Source: Basidiobolus meristosporus CBS 931.73
Lineage: Eukaryota > Fungi > Basidiobolomycota
Assembly: GCA_002104905.1 (NCBI GenBank)
Contig: MCFE01000319.1
Location: 32,039-96,038, forward strand
Length of the DNA stretch: 64,000 bases
Reading direction: 5' to 3'
A program made the position numbers and the translations under genes. This document shows positions 2,773 to 49,098 of the stretch, piece after piece (position 1 is the first letter of the stretch; every line of letters starts with the position of its first letter). A model generated the notes under the pieces. The model did no database searches and was not told the origin of the DNA. It saw only the letters and a list, made by a program, of their open reading frames with translations.

Positions 2773-4310
2773 CTACACGCGCATCTGTTTGTTCAACACT
2801 GGGACATCGGTCGTTCGACTGAAGACATCTTCACCTGGTCCGCGGATGAATTTGGCCGGAACGCCATAAAGGAATACCCCAACAACCGAAAATACAATCG
2901 CCAACAGGAACGGGGGCCAATCATATTCCCCGAAAAACGTGAAGTGTAGACCGTCACCAACATTTCCTTCATGGATTGCACCATACACCATCACGGAGAG
3001 GAAGGATATAATCCATCCAGAAATGACAGATCCAGTGGTTACGTAGGGTTGCAGACGTCTCGAGAGGCCTAATAGGATTGGACAGGTGCAGCAGGAAGCT
3101 ATCATATTGGACAGCAAAAACAGATTCATCACTGGATAGCCTTGGAGAGAGACCACTACCAAAGGAATGTTCACGACCACCACGACCAGACGCGACCACC
3201 ATACGGATTTCCCCTTCAACAAGACAGAAGAAATACTGTCCACAAGAGCATTTTGAAGACTGTCAACGGCAGATTGGTTCATTGTAGCAGCCAAAACGGT
3301 AACCATAACAGTTATCCATATTGGTGCCTCGCCCCCTGCTCCAAGCAGGGTAAAAAGTACTGTGTTTGGGTTGGTAACTTCCAATCCGGCCCAGGCAGCT
3401 AAGAATCCGCAGAATCCCAAGAAAAAGATAACGACGGTGACCATTCCCATGGCAAATAGGGCGCCAGTTTTCAAGGCTTTGTCGTCAGCCGATGCCCAGA
3501 CACGTTGCCAGAAGCCCTCATTATAGATGGACGCACACGTTAAAGAGATGGGCATAACGGCAATTGCGGAATAACCGTAATAATTGGGGGCGATGTTTGG
3601 TGGAAGCTCCGATGATAGCGGCTGTCGGAACGTTACTGCGATATACACTGCCATGATGCCAACAAACAAAAGACTGAATAGTGCTTGGGCCTGATCAGTA
3701 ATAATCGATACGGAAAGGCCACCAGATGCAGTGTAGAGCATGGTCGACACACCAATAACCAAGACAATTGGGATGCGGTTGCTGCCGATTACCGTCTCAA
3801 AGAGGTCCCCGATGGATGTATATTCTGCTGTGAGTCCAATACTCATATTGAATAACATAATGATGGTCACCAGAGCCTGAAGTGTTGGGCTAAAGCGCCA
3901 ACGAACAAAGTCAGCCATAGACTGAACTTGTGGAAAACGTTCCTGGATTTTACCACCAAAAAACGCAACTACGAAAATAGGGATTCCACATGCTATAGCA
4001 TAAAAGGTAATTCCGATTATTCCAGCATACAACGCGTAGCTTGGAGGGCCAAATAGAGTCCTACAGGAAATAGAGTTCTAGCATCAAAGTCAAAGCGAGT
4101 CTCATCGATACCCATTTACCAAGCACCAACTGCAGCAGCATAGAAGCTCCAAGCGATCCTTGCAGTAGGTTGAGAGTTTCGTGCGGTCAAGAAAAAATCG
4201 GGGTTATCGTTCTTCTCCTTCATTTTTCGACTCCATATCAATGCGAATATTGCGAATCCAACACACACTACAACACTAGTGGTATACGCGGCAACGGGTA
4301 ATGAAGCCAT
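2773..4310 (-). CDS. Sodium:solute symporter (SSS) family transporter, 2 exons
   Basis: Exon 1 4310-4120 (MASLPVAAY...FFLTARNS...WSFYAAAVGAW) joins in frame across a 59-nt GTAAAT..TGTAG intron (4119-4061) to exon 2 (TLFGPPSYALYAGIIG...). About 13 hydrophobic segments and motifs F.TAR.S, YTASGGL.VSI.TDQ.Q and WQR..A typical of SSS/PutP/Dur3-like carriers. Substrate unknown. Confidence 0.88.
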
Positions 4311-28748: not shown

Positions 28749-29441
28749 TCAAGGGTTCAGGAGAGACTCGACTGAGAAGATCGAGTTTGTCCTTGAGGTG
28801 CCTTGAGGTTTCCGATCAAGCATGATAGAGGTTTGCCATTTGTATGCTGGAGTGAACAAGGGCTCGCAAGATTGGGTAAATGGATAATGACCAACAACCA
28901 ACATGGAATGCCCCTCGATATCAGTTGGTGTAATGGGGCTTGTCGGCTCAGAAGATGTCCATCTGTCGTTGTAAAGCCCGGCGGGTTTTGGGAGGGAGTA
29001 CACATCATCTTGGTATGGGAGGAATGGTGCAGGTCGAGATTTCTTACTCTTTGCGGAGCACAGGCTTACTTCCTCGGGCTTCCGCTTCGAAGCAGGGCTG
29101 GTGCCTCTTGAGGGATCTATCTGGGTATTTGCTGGCTCATTGGTACATGGCTTCTTTTCGTGAATACGCTTGTGTCTGAGCAGCTCGTCAGACCGCGCAA
29201 AGCTCTTTAAGCAACCATAAAAATCACAGTGATAAGGCTTTTCGCCTGTGTGAGTTCGAAGATGCCTAGTGCGATGTTCCAAGCGGTTGAAGGACTTATC
29301 ACAGAGATTGCAAGCATATGGGCGGGGCGCCTTCATTGCATTGGTTGCAATAGAGAAAGTATGGAAGTATGGGTTTGGCTTGGGGGACTTCTTATCCCTA
29401 TTGAGCAAGTTTGTGATGTTCAATGGTCCACTAGTGTTCAT
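28749..29441 (-). CDS. C2H2 zinc-finger transcription factor, CreA/Mig1 family
   Basis: [55 protein letters not shown] carries the CreA/Mig1 recognition helices RLEH.TRH and RSDEL.RH. Intronless, 230 aa. Confidence 0.9.
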
Positions 29442-35412: not shown

Positions 35413-38400
35413 ATGAGTCAAAGAATTGAGCAAGATCTTGACCTTTCATCACATCCTCAAAACGCTCACAACAGCGGCAAAGCTTCTCGTAAGAACCTCT
35501 GGGATCTAGTCTCCAATCCATTCTCCAGCGAGGGGCTTAGTACTAGTCCCAATCAACCCGAGACCAACTCCCCCAAACCCACAAAAAACGACAAGGTTGA
35601 AGCTAAACAGGTGAATTACATGGACTCCAGCAAATTTGAAGGCGGAACTACGACTCCTACCATCTCTAGCAATGTCTCCTCCTACCGGCAGTCTCCTATC
35701 CCAGGAAGTTATCCATCTCAACCTAATTCACCGGTTCTGGAATATCCCGAACTAAACGAAGACCCTAAAGAATCGGATATGACGGGGTCCAGTTTTCGCA
35801 ATTTCCCCACCTTTTTCCCACTCACTACCTCATCTACCACCAAGTCGAGCGCTAGGGAGGTTAGTGACGCGAGCTCCAGTGCCACGAAGCCTGAGAAATA
35901 CCATGCTAGACGTTCTAGTGCAGGATTCCTCAAGAGTAAAGGCTCGGCCAGTAATCGAAGATCAAGTGCCCATGTACCAACTCGCATCTCTGAGAAGCCA
36001 GAAACATCTACCACCGATAATACACAGAAGCCTTTGGTAGTATCGAGTCTTGAAGCGCCAGCGCGACCTGCTGCAAGTTTGGCAAGGTCTGAGGCAAGTG
36101 ACAACCAGGAGGATGACAACGCCCCACCTGACCAAAGTATATCTGGCTTTCCTACTGCGCTTGGTGCCTCAGCGATTACTGGTGTAGCAGCAATAACAGG
36201 ACATTTGGCGGGTTCTTCCAAACAACCCGGCGCCCATTCAGAGACCTCAAGCGCTAACGAGTTTAGCAAGACCATTGTGGTCCCAGGGGACGACAGTGGC
36301 ATGGATAGATCTACGAAACTGCCTATTAGATCTTCCTCTGGCGAAGAGGTATTGCGGCATAGCAAATTGTATTGATTTGGCAGAACCTAACATGCTTTTC
36401 ATTAGGATACCTTGCTGAGTGGAGGGGACCAAACTAAGCAAGAAGCTGAACTCGGTCAAAATCAACCAATTGCAGGCCTATTCTCTGACAGTACCAACAT
36501 TGAGCAAACACCACATGGTTCGCTAACGTCGGACATCAGCCTACCAACATTTACGTCGCCTAACGCCGGATCAATATCTGCATGGGAGGAGGTGACAGAC
36601 CCACGCAGCACTCGGGATCATTGGATAAATACCAGCGAAGTCATTAGTCAAGCAAGTCCCACCAGAGGGTTGGATTCTGAACCTGGTGAGAGCGATGATC
36701 TCGTCAAATCGATCAGTATTCATGGGCCATTATTTGCTACCTCTGACAATATTCACACTCAACAGCAGAGCATGCAGGATTCTAATCTACCATCCACTAC
36801 TCACAGATTAACTACGGATATTTCCCCTATCTTTGGGCAAAGCAGATTTGGAGAGGGTGAGGCCAACAGCCTTCATAACGATCAACTGCTCAATAGAAAT
36901 ACTGGTGAATACGCGAAGCTCACCGATGATTTGCAGGACTCTAATTTAGTTGGCCCGGACGATGCCATCAATACCACAGCTGAACAGTTCTCACCAGGAT
37001 CTGTAACATCGCACCAAGTAGAATCAATAGGTCTTTATGGCACAAGCACTGATAATTCGAACATGGCAAGCGACAAAGCAGTCATCGAAAGAGCGGACGA
37101 GGCACCCGCTGAGGTTGTTAGCGACGGAAATAACCTCACAAGTGTGTCAATAGGAATACTTGGAGGAACAGTGTTGGGGGCTGGCATGAGTAGTCTGTTC
37201 AGTGAAACAGATAGAAGTTCGGTTGAGGAAGTTCACAAGAGCGAATCCAGCCAATATTCCAAACTGGCAGGCGACTTGACTAACATCGACCCTGAACTGC
37301 AACAAGCGGGAATAAGAGAAAATACCGCTCAATTGAGCAGTTCGGGTGGATCCACTAATCTTGAAACTACTGATGGTGGATATTCTGAGAAGGAGGACAC
37401 GTCCATAGTAGGGGATGCGATATCGAGAAGAGTGAGGGGCGCAAATCTTGTCAACACCAGAGGTACTGTTACTGAAATGATCAATGAATCAGCAACCGTC
37501 AGCCTAAACCCTCTGGAACTACACGACATCATCCATCCTACCGCCGAATCCCAGGAAAGAGGAGTGATTTCGACTACTGTTGAGCATATCAAAAATAGCA
37601 TTGGTGGAACTTCTGACAACAATGAAGCCAGTGAAAGGAGCGGAATTATCAAGGGAATTGCAGGAGTATTAGGTAGTGCAGCACTTGCTGTGGGTGCTGG
37701 TAGTCTGTTAAATACTTCTGAGAGAAATTCGGCTGAAGAGCTACCTGAGAAGGTTGCAACTATAAGCTTACACTCCAATGACATAGACAGAATTCTGCAT
37801 AAACCTGGACCACAGCAAGGCAATATAGTGACAAATACAGCCGAATGGATAAAGAGCGCCACCGGGTTTTCGAATACTGATGAAGTGAATGAAGGAGGCT
37901 CCTATCGTAAAGGGATTATCGGCATATTAGGCGGAGCATCTGTGGTTACAGGAGTCGGCAGCCTTTTCAGCAGGGATGAAAGTTCTATAGACATCATGGC
38001 CAAAAATGCCGCAACAATCGGCCTACATCCCAATGAAATCCACAAGATCCTACATCCTTCAGTTGTACATCAGCCAGGGGACATCATCGGCAGAGCCACC
38101 GAGTGGCTCAAGAGCAGTACATCCAAAATCACAAGTGTCGGCGAAGAAAACGATGGGCATCTCTTCAGTGAAACGATTGCGGGAATATTAGGCGGAGCAT
38201 CGTTGGGTATTGGTGTCGGTAGCCTGCTCAACAAAAGTGGTAATTCCATCACGGATATGGCCAAAAACGTCGCAACGATTGGGCTACATCCTGATGAGAT
38301 CCACAGTATTCTGCATCCTTCAAGCGTTCCTCAACAAGGTAATCTGATAAATAGAGCTACTGAGTGGTTGAAGAGTGGTACAAAAAAACCCCCTACTTCC

Positions 38401-41400
38401 AGTGAAGAAAACAGTGGACATCACTTCGGTGAAGGAATTGCCAGAATATTAGGTGGAACGGCATTAGGTGGAGGCATTAGTAGTCTCTTCGAGGGAAAAA
38501 GCTCTAATCAGAGAATGGCCGAGGAGATTTCAACGGTCAGCTTGCACTCCGACGAAGTCACTGATATTCTGAATTCTTCAAGTATATACCAGCAGAGCGC
38601 TACCAAATGGACAGGCTCCAGTGTTACGAAGAGTGAAGGAAGCTACTTGAGTAAAGAAGGTGCTGGAATATTGAGTGGAGAAGTACTAGGAGTTGGTACC
38701 AGCAGCAACACGGGTCATAGCAGAGATACTTATGAAACTATAACCGACAGCTCCGAACTCAATAGCTCACAGGCAACATCTACGTATCTAAATTCAGACA
38801 TCTCAGGTGCCCTTGGAGCCACTGGCGAAGCACAGCAAGTTGGTACAAAGAGTAGTGCTACTGGATGGATGAACAATAGCACTTCTCAACAAGCCGACGT
38901 AAAGGCAGAGTGTGAAGAAGGTCATTTCAACAAAGGAGTGGCTGGTGTGCTAGGAGGAACGGCGCTTGGTGCCATTATCGGTAGCCAGCTAGATCAGTCA
39001 AGTAGAGGAAGTGGTTACGACAATACTGCTGAAAACACCGGGGTGACTGGACAGTACTTAGCAGGAAGAGCTCAGGCTAATCAAAGCTCAGGCGATATCC
39101 AACAGTACAACGTGGAAAGTAATCGCACTGATTGGACCGAGAATAGCCTACCAGGAGCTGGTATTGGCAGCCACTTGAGTGAGAGCAGAGAAATCCTTAA
39201 CAACGATGCGATTGAAAGCGCAACATCAGCAGGACTAAGTTCTGATGAAGTTACCGATATTCTTCAATCCTCCGAAGATGCTCATCTTGTTACAGGTGGT
39301 ACTCAACTTGGAGGCATGGGAAGCAGTACTACTGGATGGACACAGAGTGACACGTATGGACAAGCGAACACCACAGAAGGATATGAAAGAGGTCACTTCA
39401 GTCCCGGAGTGGCTGGTGTGCTAGGAGGATCTGCGCTTGGTGCCGCTACTGGTAGTCAGCTAGGTCAGTCAAGTAGAGGAAGTGGATATGACAATACTGC
39501 TGATAACGCTGAGGTGGCCGGGGAATACTCTGCAGTAGGCGCTCCGGCTAATCAAGACTCAGGCGACATCCAGCAGCACAATGTGGAAAGCAGTCGCACT
39601 ACCTGGACACAGAACAGCACATCTGGAGCGGCCGCTACTGAAGAAGAGACGGAAGGGCATCACTTCAGCAAGGGAGTTGCAGGTGTGATGGGTGCAGCAG
39701 TATTGGGAGCGGGAGTCAGTGGTCTTCTTCACAGAAGAAAGGAGGATACGGATGACAGACGCACTGAGAGCTCATCCGCAGACAACCAATACGACAACCA
39801 TGATGCTGATATTTCACAGCTCTCCAGCAAACCCGAACAAAGTGGAACTTCACTTGGCACTGGGGCTGGCCTAGGCAGTCACCTGAGTGAGACCAGAGAC
39901 AGCTTCAACGATGATGCGATAGAAAGCGCAACATCAGCTGGGTTGAGTTCGGATGAAGTCACGAATGTGCTTCAATCCTCCGAAGATGCCCTACCTGCTA
40001 TAGGAGATGGTCGACTTGAAGGCATGGGAAGCAGCACTACTGGATGGACAAGGAGTGACACGTATGGACAAGCGGACACCACAGAAGGATATGAAGGAGG
40101 TCACTTCAGTCCCGGAGTGGCTGGTGTGCTAGGAGGATCTGCACTTGGTGCCGCTACTGGTAGTCAGCTAGGTCAGTCAAGTAGAGGAAGTGGTGATGAC
40201 ATTGCTGCTGATGATACTGAGGCGACTGGGCAATACTTTGCAGTAGGCACTCAGGCCAATCAAAACTCAGGCAACACCCAACAGTACAATGTGGAAAGCA
40301 GTCGCACTGGTTGGACGCAGAACAGCACATCCGGGACGCCCGGTACTGAAGAACAGACCGAAGGGCATCACTTCAGCAAGGGAGTTGCAGGTGTGATGGG
40401 TGCAGCAGTATTGGGAGCGGGAGTCAGTGGTCTTCTACACAGAAGAAATGAGGATACGGATGACAGACGCACTGAGAGCTCATCCGCGGACAACCAATAC
40501 AACAACCATGAGGCTGATATTTCACAGCTCTCCAGCAAATCCGAACAAAGTGGAACTTCACTTGGCAGCGGGGCTGGCATAGGCAGTCACCTGAGTGAGA
40601 CCAGGGACAGCTTCAACGATGATGCGATAGAAAGCGCAACATCCGCTGGGCTGAGTTCGGATGAAGTCACGAATGTACTTCAATCCTCCGAGGATGCCCG
40701 ACTTGATAGCAAAGGAAGCACCACTACTGGATGGACACAGAGTGACATGTATGGCCAAGCGGACACCACAGAAGGATATGAAGGAGGTCACTTCAGTCCC
40801 GGAGTGGCTGGTGTGCTAGGAGGATCTGCACTTGGTGCCGCTACTGGTAGTCAGCTAGGTCAGTCAAGTAGAGGAAGTGGTGATGACATTGCTGCTGATG
40901 ATACTGAGGCGACTGGGCAATACTTTGCAGTAGGCACTCAGGCCAATCAAAACTCAGGCAACACCCAACAGTACAATGTGGAAAGCAGTCGCACTGGTTG
41001 GACGCAGAACAGCACATCCGGGACGCCCGGTACTGAAGAACAGACCGAAGGGCACGGCTTCAGCAAGGGAGTTGCAGGTGTGATGGGTGCAGCAGTATTA
41101 GGAGCGGGAATAAGTGGTCTTCTACACAGGGGAAAAGAGAACACTGATGACAGTCCTATTGAGAGTTCCTCCGCACACAACCAGTACAGCAACCATGAGG
41201 CTGATATTTCACAGCTCTCTAGCAAATCCGAACAAAGTGGATCTTCACTTGGCACTGGGGCTGGCATAGGCAGTCATCTGAGTGAGACCAGAGACAGCTT
41301 CAACGATGATGCGATAGAAAGCGCAACATCCGCTGGGCTGAGTTCGGATGAAGTCACGAATGTGCTTCAATCCTCCGAAGATGCCCTACCTGCTATAGGA

Positions 41401-44400
41401 GATGGTCGACTTGAAGGCATGGGAAGCAGCACTACTGGATGGACAAGGAGTGACACGTATGGACAAGCGGACACCACAGAAGGATATGAAAGAGGTCACA
41501 TCAGTCCCGGAGTGGCTGGTGTGCTAGGAGGATCTGCGCTTGGTGCCGCTACTGGTAGTCAGCTAGGTCAGTCAAGCAGAGGAAGTGGCGATGACATTGC
41601 CGCTGATGATACTGAGGTGACTGGGCAATACTCTGCAGTAGATACTCAGGCTAATCAAGGCCTAGGGGACACCCAACAGTACAATGTGGAAAGCAGTCGC
41701 ACCGGTTGGACACAGAACAGCACATCTGGAGCGGCCGCTACTGAAGAAGAGACGGAAGGGCATCACTTCAGCAAGGGGGTTGCAGGTGTGATGGGTGCAG
41801 CAGTATTGGGAGCGGGAGTTAGTGGTCTTCTTCACAGAAGAAAAGAGAACACTGATGACAGTCCTGTTGAGAGCTCATCCGTAGACAACCAATACGACAA
41901 CCATGATGCTGATATTTCACAGCTCTCCAGCAAATCAGAACAAAGTGAAACTGCACTAGGTACTGGGGCTGGCATTGGCATTGGCAGTCACCTGAGTGAG
42001 ACCAGAGACAGCTTCAACGATGATGCGATAGAAAGCGCAACATCCGCTGGGCTGAGTTCGGATGAAGTCACGAATGTTCTTCAATCCTCCGAAGATGCCC
42101 TACCTGCTGTAGGAGATGGTCGACTTGAAGGCATGGGAAGCAGTACTACTGGATGGACAAGGAGTGACACGTATGGACAAGCGGGCACCACAGAAGGATA
42201 TGAAAGAGGTCACATCAGTCCCGGAGTGGCTGGTGTGCTAGGAGGATCTGCACTTGGTGCCGCTACTGTTAGTCAGCTAGGTCAGTCAAGTAGAGGAAGT
42301 GGTGATGACATTGCTGCTGATGATACTGAGGCGACTGGGCAATACTTTGCAGTAGACACTCAGGCTAATCAAGGCCTAGGCGACACCCAACAGTACAATG
42401 TGGAAAGCAGTCGCACCGGTTGGACACAGAACAGCACATCTGGAGCGGCCGCTACTGAAGAAGAGACGGAAGGGCATCACTTCAGCAAGGGAGTTGCAGG
42501 TGTGATGGGTGCAGCAGTATTGGGAGCGGGAATCAGTGGTCTCCTTCACAGAAGAAAGGAGGATACGGATGACAGACGCACTGAGAGCTCATCCGCGGAC
42601 AACCAATACAACAACCATGAGGCTGATATTTCAAAGTTCTCTAGTAAATCCGAACGAAGTGGAACTTCACTTGGCACTGGGGCTGGCCTAGGCAGTCATC
42701 TGGGTGAGACCAGAGACAGCTTCAACGATGATGCGATAGAAAGCGCAACATCCGCTGGGCTGAGTTCGGATGAAGTCACGAATGTACTTCAATCCTCCGA
42801 GGATGCCCGACTTGATAGCAAAGGAAGCACCACTACTGGATGGACACAGAGTGACATGTATGGCCAAGCGGACACCACAGAAGGATATGAAGGAGGTCAC
42901 TTCAGTCCCGGAGTGGTTGGTGTGCTAGGAGGATCTGCACTTGGTACCGCTACTGGTAGTCAGCTAGGTCAGTCAAGCAGAGGAAGTGGCGATGACATTG
43001 CCGCTGATGATACTGAGGTGACTGGGCAATACTCTGCAGTAGACACTCAGGTTAATCAAGGCCTAGGGGACACCCAACAGTACAATGTGGAAAGCAGTCG
43101 CACCGGTTGGACACAGAACAGCACATCTGGAGCGGCCGCTACTGAAGAAGAGACGGAAGGGCATCACTTCAGCAAGGGAGTTGCAGGTGTGATGGGTGCA
43201 GCAGTATTGGGAGCGGGAATCAGTGGTCTTCTTCACAGAAGAAATGAGGATACGGATGACAGACGCACTGAGAGCTCATCCGCAGACAACCAATACAACA
43301 ACCATGATGCTGATATTTCACAGCTCTCCAGCAAATCCGAACAAAGTGGAACTTCACTTGGCACCGGGGCTGGCCTAGGCAGTCATCTGAGTGAGACCAG
43401 AGACAGCTTCAACGATGATGCGATAGAAAGCGCAACATCCGCTGGGCTGAGTTCGGATGAAGTCACGAATGTTCTCCAATCCTCCGAAGATGCCCTACCT
43501 GTTACAGGAGATGGTCGACTTGAAGACATGGGAAGCAGCACTACTGGATGGACAAGGAGTGATACGTATGGCCAAGCGGACACCACAGAAGGATATGAAG
43601 GGGGTCACTTCAGTCCCGGAGTGGCTGGTGTGCTAGGAGGATCTGCACTTGGTGCCGCTACTGGTAGTCAGCTAGGTCAGTCAAGCAGAGGAAGTGGCGA
43701 TGACATTGCTGCTGATGATACTGAGGCGACTGGGCAATACTTTGCAGTAGACACTCAGGCTAATCAAGGCCTAGGGGACACCCAACAGTACAATGTGGAA
43801 AGCAGTCGCACCGGTTGGACACAGAACAGCACATCTGGAGCGGCCGCTACTGAAGAAGAGATGGAAGGTCATCACTTCAGCAAGGGAGTTGCAGGTGTGA
43901 TGGGTGCAGCAGTATTGGGAGCGGGAATCAGTGGTCTTCTTCACAGAAGAAAGGAGGATACGGATGACAGACGCACTGAGAGCTCATCCGTAGACAACCA
44001 ATACAACAACCATGAGGCTGATATTTCACAGCTCTCCAGCAAATCCGAACAAAGTGGAACTTCACTTGGCACCGGGGCTGGCATAGGCAGTCACCTGAGT
44101 GAGACCAGAGACAGCTTCAACGATGATGCGATAGAAAGCGCAACATCAGCTGGGCTGAGTTCGGATGAAGTCACGAATGTACTTCAATCCTTCGAGGATG
44201 CCCGACTTGATAGCAAAGGAAGCACCACTACTGGATGGGCACAGAGTGACACGTATGGCCAAGCGGACACCACAGAAGGATATGAAGGAGGTCACTTCAG
44301 TCCCGGAGTGGTTGGTGTGCTAGGAGGATCTGCACTTGGTGCCGCTACTGGTAGTCAGCTAGGTCAGTCAAGCAGAGGAAGTGGTGATGACATTGCTGCT

Positions 44401-47400
44401 GATGATACTGAGGCGACTGGGCAATACTTTGCAGTAGACACTCAGGCTAACCAAGGCCTAGGCGACACCCAACAGTACAATGTGGAAAGCAGTCGCACCG
44501 GTTGGACACAGAACAGCACATCTGGAGCGGCCGCTACTGAAGAAGAGGCGGAAGGGCATCACTTCAGCAAGGGAGTTGCAGGTGTGATGGGTGCAGCAGT
44601 ATTGGGAGCGGGAGTCAGTGGTCTTCTTCACAGAAGAAAAGAGAACACTGATGACAGACGCACTGAGAGCTCATCCGCAGACAACCAATACAACAACCAT
44701 GAGGCTGATATTTCAAAGTTCTCTAGTAAATCCGAACAAAATGGAACTTCACTTGGCACTGGGGCTGGCCTAGGCAGTCATCTGAGTGAGACCAGAGACA
44801 GCTTCAACGATGATGCGATAGAAAGCGCAACATCCGCTGGGCTGAGTTCGGATGAAGTCACGAATGTACTTCAATCCTCCGAGGATGCCCGACTTGATAG
44901 CAAAGGAAGCACCACTACTGGATGGGCACAGAGTGACACGTATGGCCAAGCGGACACCACAGAAGGATATGAAGGAGGTCACTTCAGTCCCGGAGTGGTT
45001 GGTGTGCTAGGAGGATCTGCGCTTGGTGCCGCTACTGGTAGTCAGCCAGGTCAGTCAAGCAGAGGAAGTGGGGATGACATTGCCGCTGATGATACTGAGG
45101 CGACTGGGCAATACTTTGCAGTAGACACTCAGGCTAACCAAGGCCTAGGCGAAACCCAACAGCACAATGTGGAAAACAGTCGCACTGGTTGGCTACAGAA
45201 TAGCACATCCACTGTGGGCTCCAAAGAAGAAGAGACGGAAGGGCACCACTTAAGCAAGGGAGTTGCGGGAGTCGTGGGTGCAGCCGTTTTGGGGGCAGGA
45301 ACCCGTGGCCTTCTCCGTAAACGAAGTGAAAACCTTGATAATGATGCAACAAACACCACTAGTACAAGTAACTCAGGCCAGCCACAGCGAGGTGATGTTA
45401 AAAGTAGGACCTTTGAGGGTGTAGCAGGCGTTCTAAGTGGTACCGCGATTGGTGCGCGTCTTAGTGGATTGTTTGGGCGGAGAGAGAAGAACTCTGTCAA
45501 TGAGATGGTTCAAGAAGCTACGTCGGAACCCTTAGATGCCGAACAATTAGATGCCGCTATTCCATCATCGTCTAAACAAACTGATAGCAATATACTTTCC
45601 CAAGCTATGGAATCCATCAGGAACAGTTTTAATACCGCCACTGGCAATGATGGGGTGAATTCCAGTGATCAACACTCTAAAGAAACTGCACAAGCGTTAG
45701 GCGGAGCATCTCTAGGCCTCGGAGCTGGCTCACTATTCAAGGCTAGAAGAAGTTCAGTTGATGAGATGGTTACACGGGTTGCAAGTGTTGGTCTGCATCC
45801 TAACAGCATTGATCAGGTATTTAATACCTCGGATGAACCGGTGGAAAGTAACCAACTCCGCCCTACTGAAACGGCGGGTACAAGAAGAGTACAACCTGCA
45901 CCTCTACCTAGTATCAGTGGCAGAGCAGGAAATAAGATTCCCAGCGTTAAAAATGATAATCTTTTTAGTGAAGCAAGAAGATTTTCTATTGATGATATGG
46001 TCAGTAGGACAGCCACGGTTAGCCTCCATCCCGATCAAATAGGTCAAGCCACCAGCCCCCGACAGTTAGGAACTGAAGAAATGTCATCAAGAAATCGAAT
46101 CAAATCGGATGATATTCCACGGATTTTAGGTTCTAAGAGATACCCTGAAGCTTTTGAAGTCTCTCCAGTACAGACCACAGCATTACCTTCCGGAAGTAGT
46201 CTTGGTATCGGTGATCTATTTGCTAGTTCGCAGTCGAGAATGAATGCAAAACTAGAACCCGACAATGAACAATCGCCACTATCAAAAACGGTCGACGACA
46301 TTAATGCCAGGTTCAATCGGATGTTTGAGTATAATGAAAGCGATAGTCTTGACGATCCAGTGACGACCAGTGAACTCGGTGAAGATATGTCAGTAGGAAC
46401 AAATGAGGCTTCTACTCCAGCAATGCAAGACCTGAATCTTGCGAACAGATCTAATTTACATGACAGTAATCTACTCCCTTTCCCTGTTACCATGTCTCCA
46501 TCGCCGCCAACTAGTGCAAGACACCACCAACCAGCTGAACGGGATATCAGCCGATTGTTCGATGATATCCCCTATCCTCAAAAACATGAAGGGCCTCAAG
46601 GTGGTGATCTAGCAAGTGCAAATGTCAGAGCACTATTTGATGATATCGAGGCTCCGTCAAACGCTAGCTCACGTATCAAACGCTCTATTGGCGCAGAAGA
46701 GCTGTATGCAGATTCGCATGAAACTCCCAAACCGACCACTTCGGATGAGCATGGAGTGCAACGCAGATTCTATGGCTCTTCCGGAGTTGCTATTTCTTCA
46801 CTAACCTCTGGTCCAAGCGAGCCAAGACTGAGTTCTCCAACAAATAACCCTATCGTCTACTCTCATCCCAACATCTTACCAAACTTTGAAGCGCATGAGA
46901 ACCGAGCCTTGGTTTCCAAACAGAGTGGCTCTCATAATCATGAACAGAAGAGTGACATTAGTGATATGATTGAGAGAACGGCTGCAGTTGGCTTAGCGTC
47001 AGGTCTCATTGGCAAGGCCGTTGGCTCATCTGAGCCAGGTGAGAATCCACGCCTTAGTAGCAAGAATGATGCCTCAATTGCGGGTGCGAACATACCTTCG
47101 GATGATGGACTGGCTGAACGCAGAGCCAATTCTTCTCTTCATTCTGGCCAAATCAACCCTACATCTCAGGAACCCCGGTCAGAATATGAATTGGTTCAAG
47201 AGGAGATTCCTCAAAGAACTCTTGACCTCGGTGTTGATCCGCAACAGCTTGGTGATTCTACATCGAATGCATATAGCGGTGTGGGTTCTGAAGATATCAA
47301 CATCGTCTCTACTTCTAAGAACGTGTTAGATAATAACACACCTCATGCTGAAAGACTAAACCAAGAAACGATTGGCACCCTTGAAACGCAGACAAGCTCT

Positions 47401-49098
47401 GATGAGGGCTTCCTAAGCTCGACTGGCACTGCGTTAGCATCTGCTGTGGCCGCTGTAGGTGTAGGAATGAGCAGTCTGATCCACAGAAACAACGACACCA
47501 CTCAGAGCATATACGCCGAGCGTTATCCTACAATTCCCTCGGACGTCCCGATTAGTAATTTCGATGAGATCCAATCTGATATATGGGCAACCGAAGAGGA
47601 TTATCTTCAGAACTCAGCCATGGCTAGGGAGCATCCATCAGTACGCTCAGATGTCTTAATGTCAACCGATGACCCAGTTGAAAAGACAGCTTCAACTATG
47701 CCAATTCCGGTCACCCAACCAGCAGAGCTAAACAGACTTGAGATAGATCCCCCAACAAGTACAGAGCCCAATGGTGGGTTGCTGGGCAAAACTAGCACCA
47801 CTATTACTGCCGCTGCTGCAGCTATAACTACCGGAGTAGGGGCATGGTTGTATGGCAAACACAGCGTTGTTGAAACTGAAATGCCACGTTTATATCCCAC
47901 TGTCCCCTCTAATGTTCCTACCGGCAGATCAATCATACCAGAACTCCAGAATGTCAATTTCTCCACAAAGTACCCGACCGTTCGTTCTGATATTCCTACT
48001 GATGACGAAACAAACATCCTTTCAGTCGAGTCCACAGATCAAACTACAGTTATTGCCACTACCCTCGAGTCGAACGAAATGCCATTACCAGGTGCATACG
48101 TCGATGAAAGCAAGTTTGAAAGCCGGGAGAACGAAACGCGGTTAGATCATAGCGTAGAGGTTGAGGCTGGCAACAAGTCCACTCGCTCCGATCCTCCGCC
48201 ACAGTTTAAAGTAGCACTGGGTGCAGCTGGAGCTGTTGGTGCTGTTGTTGGTGCAGGCTATGCGTACCACAAACTACGCAAAGAATCTAGTCACGAGGCT
48301 ACGGATACTGAAGAAAGATTCTGGATTCTTCACCGACAAAAATCGCTTGAAGATATTGTAGAACACCGACCACCACCGTCAAATGGGCCAGAGCAGATCA
48401 CCCCCGATGAAGCAAACTTCTGGATAGAGCACCGACGTAAATCTTTAGAAGATATATTGCAGAATAAGCCCCTTCCTGCCACCAGCCAAGCAAAGAAGGT
48501 AAAAACCCCGACCAAATCCACACAAGATAACATCCCTCTTGCAATGGACACCTCCCTGTACTTTGTTCCTTCAAACAAATCTACCGTTGACAATGATTCA
48601 CCTCGCGGGCCAAGACAAAGAGCTATCTATAACGAACTGAATGCCAACTTGGAGCAAACCCCCACTGAATCGAAAACCAACGAACTTCCTGAGCCGGCAA
48701 TTCACTCTAACAATGAAGCCTCCACACCACAACAACCCATAACGCAAAGCACTACCCAAGTAACACCAATCCCGCAGTTGGCAGAAGATTACATAAGAAA
48801 CACTCAGCCCACAGCGTCGATTCCCCATAGAAACCCATCAGCGAAAAGTAACGAGGGGGAGATAACTGTACTAACCCAACAATCCCCGGCTACTACCGAG
48901 ATCGTTTCGACAACGAAAGGAAAGCATCCGGAGCTTGATCTTCACGAGTCGGACAGTGAAACCCACTTCACGGATCCAATTCAATCGCAAAATCAGCAAG
49001 TATCGAAGAACGGAACATTCAAAAAGTTCACTCGTACTGTGCGTAAGCGATTGAATTCGCTGCTGGGTGGCCGCAATCAAACAGGAACGGCACACTAG
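35413..49098 (+). CDS. Giant (~4,542 aa) Ser/Thr/Gly/Glu-rich repeat protein of unknown function, 2 exons
   Basis: Exon 1 35413-36348 joins in phase across a 57-nt intron (GTATTG..CTAAC..ATTAG, 36349-36405) to a 12.7-kb open exon 2. No signal peptide and no recognisable globular domain. Confidence 0.9.
38870..45320 (+). repeat. In-frame coding tandem array, about 9 units of 687-714 nt
   Basis: The anchor GGTCAC(T/A)TCAGTCCCGGAGTGG occurs at 39391, 40099, 40786, 41494, 42208, 42895, 43603, 44290 and 44977 (spacings 708, 687, 708, 714, 687, 708, 687, 687, all multiples of 3). Units are near-identical; both ends are degenerate. Confidence 0.97.

Follow-up and report, generated by a model that had tools for sequence, protein, structure and literature searches.

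In filamentous ascomycetes, the Woronin body is tethered by Leashin (Lah), a giant protein whose ends bind different targets (PMC2690989, PMC5345055) and which contains a membrane-spanning segment ~220–240 amino acids (aa) from its C-terminus (PMC5345055); Woronin bodies occur in Pezizomycotina alone (PMC7559983). Here we analyze a gene from the fungus Basidiobolus meristosporus CBS 931.73 (Basidiobolomycota), located in a stretch of 64,000 nucleotides (assembly GCA_002104905.1, contig MCFE01000319.1, positions 32,039 to 96,038 of the forward strand; hereinafter, the window). The gene occupies positions 35413–49098 of the window and encodes an acidic protein of 4,542 aa that carries ~30 evenly spaced glycine-zipper hydrophobic segments of 19 residues each, most of them within modules of ~87 aa. 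We tentatively suggest that this protein could be a cytosolic multivalent tether or scaffold. Lah combines an N-terminal Woronin-body-binding domain with a C-terminal septal-pore targeting domain that includes the transmembrane segment, and can be likened to the Basidiobolus protein by overall design only; the same qualification applies to the last hydrophobic segment of the Basidiobolus protein, which is located 276 aa from the end. In this restricted sense, that is, as a resemblance in design only, Leashin/Lah may be regarded as the nearest known design. To our knowledge, Lah has not been described as carrying a glycine-zipper array.

The zipper itself belongs to a known motif class. The Pfam glycine-zipper families (PF13441, PF05433 and PF13488, Gly-zipper_Omp) likewise feature a hydrophobic segment of ~19 residues with a Gly every 3–4 residues, and consist mostly of small bacterial envelope proteins. 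Among the B. meristosporus modules, the highest score against PF13441 is 11.9 bits, below the cut-off of 28.9, and none of these families matched 900–1,230-aa pieces of the protein at E ≤ 1. The MICOS subunit Mic10 (DUF543, PF04418), which also has a glycine-rich membrane helix, was rejected as a candidate: the match reaches 17.8 bits vs. a cut-off of 24.1 and covers only 21 positions at the end of the profile, i.e., it reflects likeness, not membership. The module as a whole is undescribed, and it is the stringing of a known motif class along a giant disordered chain that is new.

The giant gene and its repeat module

Two plus-strand open reading frames (ORFs), 35413–36375 and 36412–49098, form one spliced gene (all features described below are on the plus strand unless indicated otherwise). 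Exon 1 (35413–36348) encodes a hydrophilic N-terminal region of 312 aa with short conserved blocks, ~40% identical to its orthologue in Basidiobolus ranarum; it is followed by a canonical 57-nt intron (36349–36405) with GT and AG ends and a CTAAC branch site, and by exon 2 (36406–49098), which consists of 4,230 codons and a stop codon. The spliced product therefore comprises 312 + 4,230 = 4,542 aa; an earlier reading of the window made from the sequence alone (hereinafter, the sequence-only reading) had recognized the giant size correctly but put the length at 4,540 aa. By script comparison, the joint translation of the two exons is identical, residue for residue, to K493DRAFT_378576 (P0001), which is labeled at NCBI as a hypothetical protein of Basidiobolus meristosporus CBS 931.73 of 4,542 aa (word search, 100% identical). 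The protein has a mass of 473.7 kDa, an isoelectric point of 4.58, a net charge of −317 and a single Cys, and is rich in S (13.6%), G (11.5%), T (9.2%), A (8.5%), E (7.2%) and D (6.6%). The first 40 residues are hydrophilic and, by inspection, lack a core resembling that of a signal peptide, in agreement with the sequence-only reading. Given the 12.7-kb open frame, the canonical intron and the identity to the deposited model, along with the dN/dS among the youngest repeats and the orthologue in B. ranarum (see below), the locus is, on the evidence of the sequences, a real protein-coding gene with two exons.

A profile hidden Markov model (HMM) built from three old modules and run on the exon-2 protein and on 20 shuffles produced 41 matches in exon 2, 37 of these with an independent E-value (iE) below 1e-4, and none in the shuffles, suggesting that the chain holds about 37 copies of the repeat unit. 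The complete module of ~87 aa is tripartite and invariably runs from a short amphipathic helix (helical moment 0.38–0.48) through the 19-residue glycine zipper to a helix-turn-helix. The zipper lacks amphipathic character and is preceded by a His/Phe/Lys flank and followed by a basic flank; the helix-turn-helix starts with S-x-D/E-D/E-M and ends with L-H-P-D-E-I-x-x-I-L, resembling 'S-x-D-D-M ... A-T-x-G-L-H-P-D-E-I-x-x-I-L'. This order is confirmed by the module alignments.

The sequence-only reading had the tripartite design recurring more than 20 times. A recurring module is indeed supported by the 37 significant HMM matches, but all three elements are present together in only ~6 modules (exon-2 aa 387–466, 473–557, 559–644, 646–730 and 3062–3142, and the partial 311–382). 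Counted separately, the Trp motif and (by pattern) the glycine zipper each occur 23 times in exon 2, and the short helix of the third element occurs 14 times, so that the zipper recurs as proposed (with 32 hydrophobic peaks by hydropathy vs. the 23 detected by pattern), whereas the amphipathic third element, although present, falls short of 20 copies. The Trp motif is similarly real but not conserved as a feature: its Trp gives way to Val, His or Ser in B. ranarum as well as in two modules of B. meristosporus and, because that position is Val in B. ranarum, Trp is not a defining residue. Finally, the hydrophobic segments are not the hairpins they were taken for but single 19-residue segments. 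Most zippers are preceded by acidic/His(-Phe-x-Lys) residues, and many are followed by a basic residue or cluster, of which HRRK is the strongest.

Kinase-type RRxS sites number five, compared to 1.0 expected from shuffles (standard deviation 1.0), too few to build on. They are located at 35908–35967, 45688–45702, 45919–45933 and 48430–48444, and three of them directly precede the S-x-D/E-D/E-M/I start of a helix.

The young array and the terminal regions

The repeats differ markedly in age. The old diverged modules, of ~87 aa each, span 37078–38841 (exon-2 aa 225–812) and include four complete three-part modules with 35–53% mutual identity; an older proto-unit (38842–39321; exon-2 aa 813–972) leads into the young array (39322–44907), which consists of 8 full units of 229–238 aa (687–714 nt) each. 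The array is followed by a last, partial and more diverged unit (44908–45372; exon-2 aa 2835–2989) and then by post-array diverged modules (45373–46095; exon-2 aa 2990–3230), one of which is complete (exon-2 aa 3062–3142; iE 2e-18). Each young unit is the module split into three subtypes, namely, Trp with a polar zipper, Trp with a zipper and HRRK, and a degenerate zipper with the helix. The sequence-only reading had correctly placed older, diverged copies (here, 19–53% identical) on both sides of the array but had also called the array near-identical; the 8 full units share 90–96.5% of their nucleotides and 84–95% of their amino acids. With a mean dN (nonsynonymous divergence) of 0.051 and a mean dS (synonymous divergence) of 0.137, dN/dS among these units is 0.37 and therefore selection acts on the reading frame of the array.

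The array also has a distinct base composition, with a G+C fraction of 0.50–0.52 and a purine-rich coding strand. Tandem Repeats Finder did not detect it because the unit, at 687–714 nt, exceeds the longest period of 500. In order, the young units are 236, 229, 236, 238, 229, 236, 229 and 229 aa long. The unit junction comes in two length variants, a 'ALPAIGDGRLEGMG' version and a shorter 'ARLDSKG' version, hinting that the duplicated blocks could be larger than one unit.

Outside the modules, the N-terminal region contains a conserved block with an NPF motif (35488–35526; protein aa 26–38) that is nearly identical in B. ranarum. We presume that this NPF could bind EH domains of the endocytic machinery, which is a lead only. 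The first Gly/Ala-rich hydrophobic segment (36139–36210; protein aa 243–266), with an insertion energy of +4.7 kcal/mol, is not conserved in B. ranarum. At the other end, the protein has a unique C-terminal region of ~1,000 aa (46096–49095) for which the family scans found no match. This region contains three hydrophobic segments: Gly/Ala segment 1 (47425–47481), followed by YPTIPSDVP at 47524–47550; segment 2 (47797–47853), followed by YPTVPSNVP at 47893–47919 and YPTVRSDIP at 47971–47997; and segment 3 (48211–48267), 276 aa from the end, followed by HKLRK. Accordingly, the YPT-x-x-S-x-x-P motif occurs three times in the C-terminal region, and FWI-x-HR-x-KSLEDI occurs twice, in both cases after segment 3 (48316–48366 and 48415–48465). 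A second, small module type can be delineated at 47425–48000, consisting of a hydrophobic Gly/Ala segment, His or Lys, ~14 residues and YPT[IV]PS[DN]VP; it is present twice, and the third copy of the motif stands alone.

Near the C-terminus, there is a basic amphipathic segment (49021–49071; protein aa 4518–4534) with a helical moment of 0.54 vs. a shuffle mean of 0.30, a value attained by 6% of the shuffles. A C-terminal basic amphipathic helix had been part of the sequence-only reading; the segment is present, but it does not form the very end, given that 8 residues come after it.

The ORFs adjoining the giant gene provide no functional context. An upstream 230-aa ORF on the minus strand (28749–29441) encodes C2H2 zinc fingers (Pfam zf-C2H2, 35.8 bits) and has no apparent link to the giant gene.

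Relatives and family scans

K7432_016467 (KAK9678991.1) of B. ranarum is orthologous to the giant protein. It shows 40% identity over the N-terminal ~500 aa, where about nine blocks, including the one with NPF, are conserved; it has the same three-part modules (~31% identical), and a 58-nt intron is located near the position of the 57-nt intron of B. meristosporus. The difference at the Trp position was noted above. Only 850 aa of this protein are known, and its frame runs off a 3,094-nt contig inside the module region; apparently, the repeats broke the B. ranarum assembly at this 3.1-kb contig. Word searches for giant relatives (2.3–7.4 kaa) and for mid-sized N-terminal relatives (825–2,625 aa) retrieved, besides the protein itself, only B. 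ranarum.

When the module profile was used in an HMM search of 1.84 billion proteins, only five other proteins matched, and K493DRAFT_378576 and K7432_016467 alone carry all three elements. The gene has been kept by selection and is, as far as found, restricted to Basidiobolus. No credible match to the module or to the protein was found in Pfam, NCBIfam or PDB sequences, so that, with the HMM search included, the view that the module belongs to no described family holds. A feature search of the ESM Atlas with the module region and with exon 1 gave scores of at most 0.84, which are leads only.

The zipper alone extends further. Three Mucor hiemalis proteins (CAO3657017-19; P0002, P0007 and P0008) and a Mucor-like relative from Logan (L003:88-2889) contain 5–8 near-identical zippers that carry a basic tail and follow each other at intervals of ~73 aa, the surrounding matrix being polar and rich in His, Asn and Asp. 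In a profile-profile comparison with hhalign, the Mucor and Basidiobolus sequences align over 29 columns only, comprising the zipper and the basic tail, with 59% identity and a probability of 96%. Given that, among the 1.84 billion proteins, only those of Mucor share the zipper, at this level of identity over these 29 columns, the zipper is, judging from the alignment, under constraint. In other respects the Mucor proteins differ: they lack the Trp helix and the third helix, have unrelated N-terminal regions and are about one quarter the size. The Mucor zipper exceeds the Pfam cut-offs for Gly-zipper_YMGG (PF13441) and for Rick_17kDa_Anti (PF05433, 'Glycine zipper 2TM domain'; 27.4 vs. 24.2 bits). 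A word search for relatives of the Mucor proteins yielded a single one (P0004, Logan).

Several other matches emerged from these searches. DUF5305 (PF17231), a family without known function, scores 36–37.5 bits vs. a cut-off of 29 on pieces of ~1,000 aa, yet a single young unit reaches only 13.3 bits (E 0.056) over positions 99–172 of the 217-position profile and, on account of this partial match, the score of the pieces probably represents summed partial, composition-like matches of the repeats. A secreted repeat protein from Amylocystis lapponica, a basidiomycete (P0005; E 1.6e-4), and a protein from a phage-like contig (P0006; E 7.9e-4) were rejected as probable chance or analogous matches. 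The latter (L002:4354-5580; 408 aa), whose gene is located two genes after that of a GpA-type terminase in metagenomic sequence, has repeats with a comparable arrangement, in which a hydrophobic segment rich in Gly and Ala is followed by a cluster of basic residues and then by a short acidic helix around 'G-L-x-P-E-E-M'.

Candidate roles of the zipper chain

AlphaFold2 assigned a mean pLDDT (predicted local distance difference test) of 52.8 to a single module (alignment of 11 rows) and of 30.3 to a stretch of three modules; short helices recur in the two models alike, without any tertiary packing. Together with the net charge of −317 and the charge-hydropathy boundary, which classes three of five regions as disordered, this is in agreement with the acidic, largely disordered chain of the sequence-only reading. 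The summed insertion energy of every hydrophobic segment is at least +2.4 kcal/mol, with a range to about +7 and with the polar zipper of each young unit at about +6 to +7 kcal/mol. With every value this high, the zippers appear to be marginal at best as translocon-inserted helices and none is clearly membrane-spanning. Moreover, equal repeats of one charge polarity are a poor fit to a simple alternating transmembrane topology.

Given the lack of a signal peptide, the acidic spacers and the marginal zippers of the same polarity, we favor, with the reserve due to a reading that has somewhat less than an even chance, a cytosolic, extended chain that acts as a multivalent tether or scaffold, its marginally hydrophobic zippers docking on membranes or on each other. 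Under this scenario, the protein would stay on the cytosolic side, and each zipper would be a weak anchor, dipping into the surface of a membrane while its basic flank faces the acidic head groups of the lipids; the acidic spacers rich in Ser, Thr, Gly and Glu would keep the chain soluble and extended. Specific attachment might come from the unique ends, i.e., from the short motifs at the N-terminus and from the three hydrophobic segments and the basic amphipathic tail at the C-terminus. The recent amplification of the 229–238-aa unit would have made the chain longer and the anchors more numerous.

Several points weigh against this proposal. The charge-hydropathy boundary classes the old-module and post-array regions as folded. 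The insertion energies are sums of single-position values (scale of Hessa 2005) without terms for position or length, and a membrane-spanning state is possible because known glycine-rich transmembrane helices are likewise only marginally hydrophobic. The literature on the locus tag, or on Basidiobolus combined with 'glycine zipper', yielded nothing. Finally, membrane docking and zipper-zipper association are not told apart by any result here.

The last point leads to an alternative that we consider possible although doubtful, namely, sticker-and-spacer self-assembly, in which the zippers would bind within or between chains and form a reversible gel, condensate or plug rather than bind membranes; the product might serve, for example, to seal pores or to structure the cytoplasm. 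Such a model would call for what is seen here, namely, numerous weak and identical hydrophobic segments within long acidic spacers and no confident fold, and small-xxx-small motifs drive tight helix-helix packing. The net charge of −317 opposes self-association, however, and the flanks of the zipper, with aromatic/His residues ahead of it and basic residues behind, resemble membrane-interface features; the complex prediction for four copies of one module, with a score of 0.02, counts neither for nor against it. The zippers might, alternatively, be transmembrane helices of a polytopic integral membrane protein with 20–30 crossings and long acidic loops on both sides, which we find rather unlikely. 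The Kyte-Doolittle means of the 19-residue segments, up to 1.8, the match of the Mucor zipper to the 'Glycine zipper 2TM domain' at 27.4 bits and the N-S-T sequon in the loop between the zippers of a young unit are compatible with such a protein, and the polar zipper and the more hydrophobic zipper with HRRK could pair in and out within each young unit. Conversely, the insertion energies run from +2.4 to +7 kcal/mol for all segments, each old module contains a single zipper and the flank polarity is constant, there is no signal peptide, and the crossing of dozens of highly acidic loops of 70–200 aa would be unusual.

A giant protectant of spores against drying, similar to late embryogenesis abundant (LEA) proteins or hydrophilins, had been the alternative offered by the sequence-only reading. 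It is suggested by the hydrophilic, acidic, Gly/Ser/Thr-rich and predicted disordered chain, but seems improbable: no LEA or hydrophilin family was detected in Pfam with E limited to ≤ 1 or to ≤ 10, and we know of no hydrophilins with regular hydrophobic zippers and conserved termini. The restriction of the gene to one genus and the lack of a known domain could also point to a non-functional, fast-decaying open frame or to an assembly artefact that inflates the array. We regard this as unlikely, and as very nearly negligible, given the dN/dS of 0.37 and the orthologue with conserved blocks; furthermore, 4,230 codons run without a stop, and the units differ by 3.5–10% in their DNA and hence are not collapsed identical copies.

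Returning to the proposed multivalent tether, we can speculate on a broader version of it, in which the Basidiobolus protein would be the largest member of an undescribed 'poly-glycine-zipper' class of early-diverging fungi that shares both the design and the zipper sequence with the Mucor proteins, and whose weak single-helix anchors, dozens of them on one disordered chain, would staple or shape a membrane within the cell or link two organelles. We consider this extension unlikely on balance, if still worth stating. For now, the protein is best viewed, from its sequence features, as an interesting orphan rather than as a new system.

Nevertheless, the gene illustrates how a protein can gain ~2,000 residues by recent tandem amplification and yet stay under selection, and such genes break short-read assemblies, the B. 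ranarum orthologue being an example. If the zippers are membrane or self-association anchors, the protein would represent a natural case of extreme multivalency, a flexible chain of 474 kDa that bears ~30 weak anchors, and would provide a defined module of ~87 aa for work in yeast or in vitro. If, in addition, the poly-glycine-zipper reading is true, these fungi would employ a tethering principle unlike that of the known two-ended tethers.

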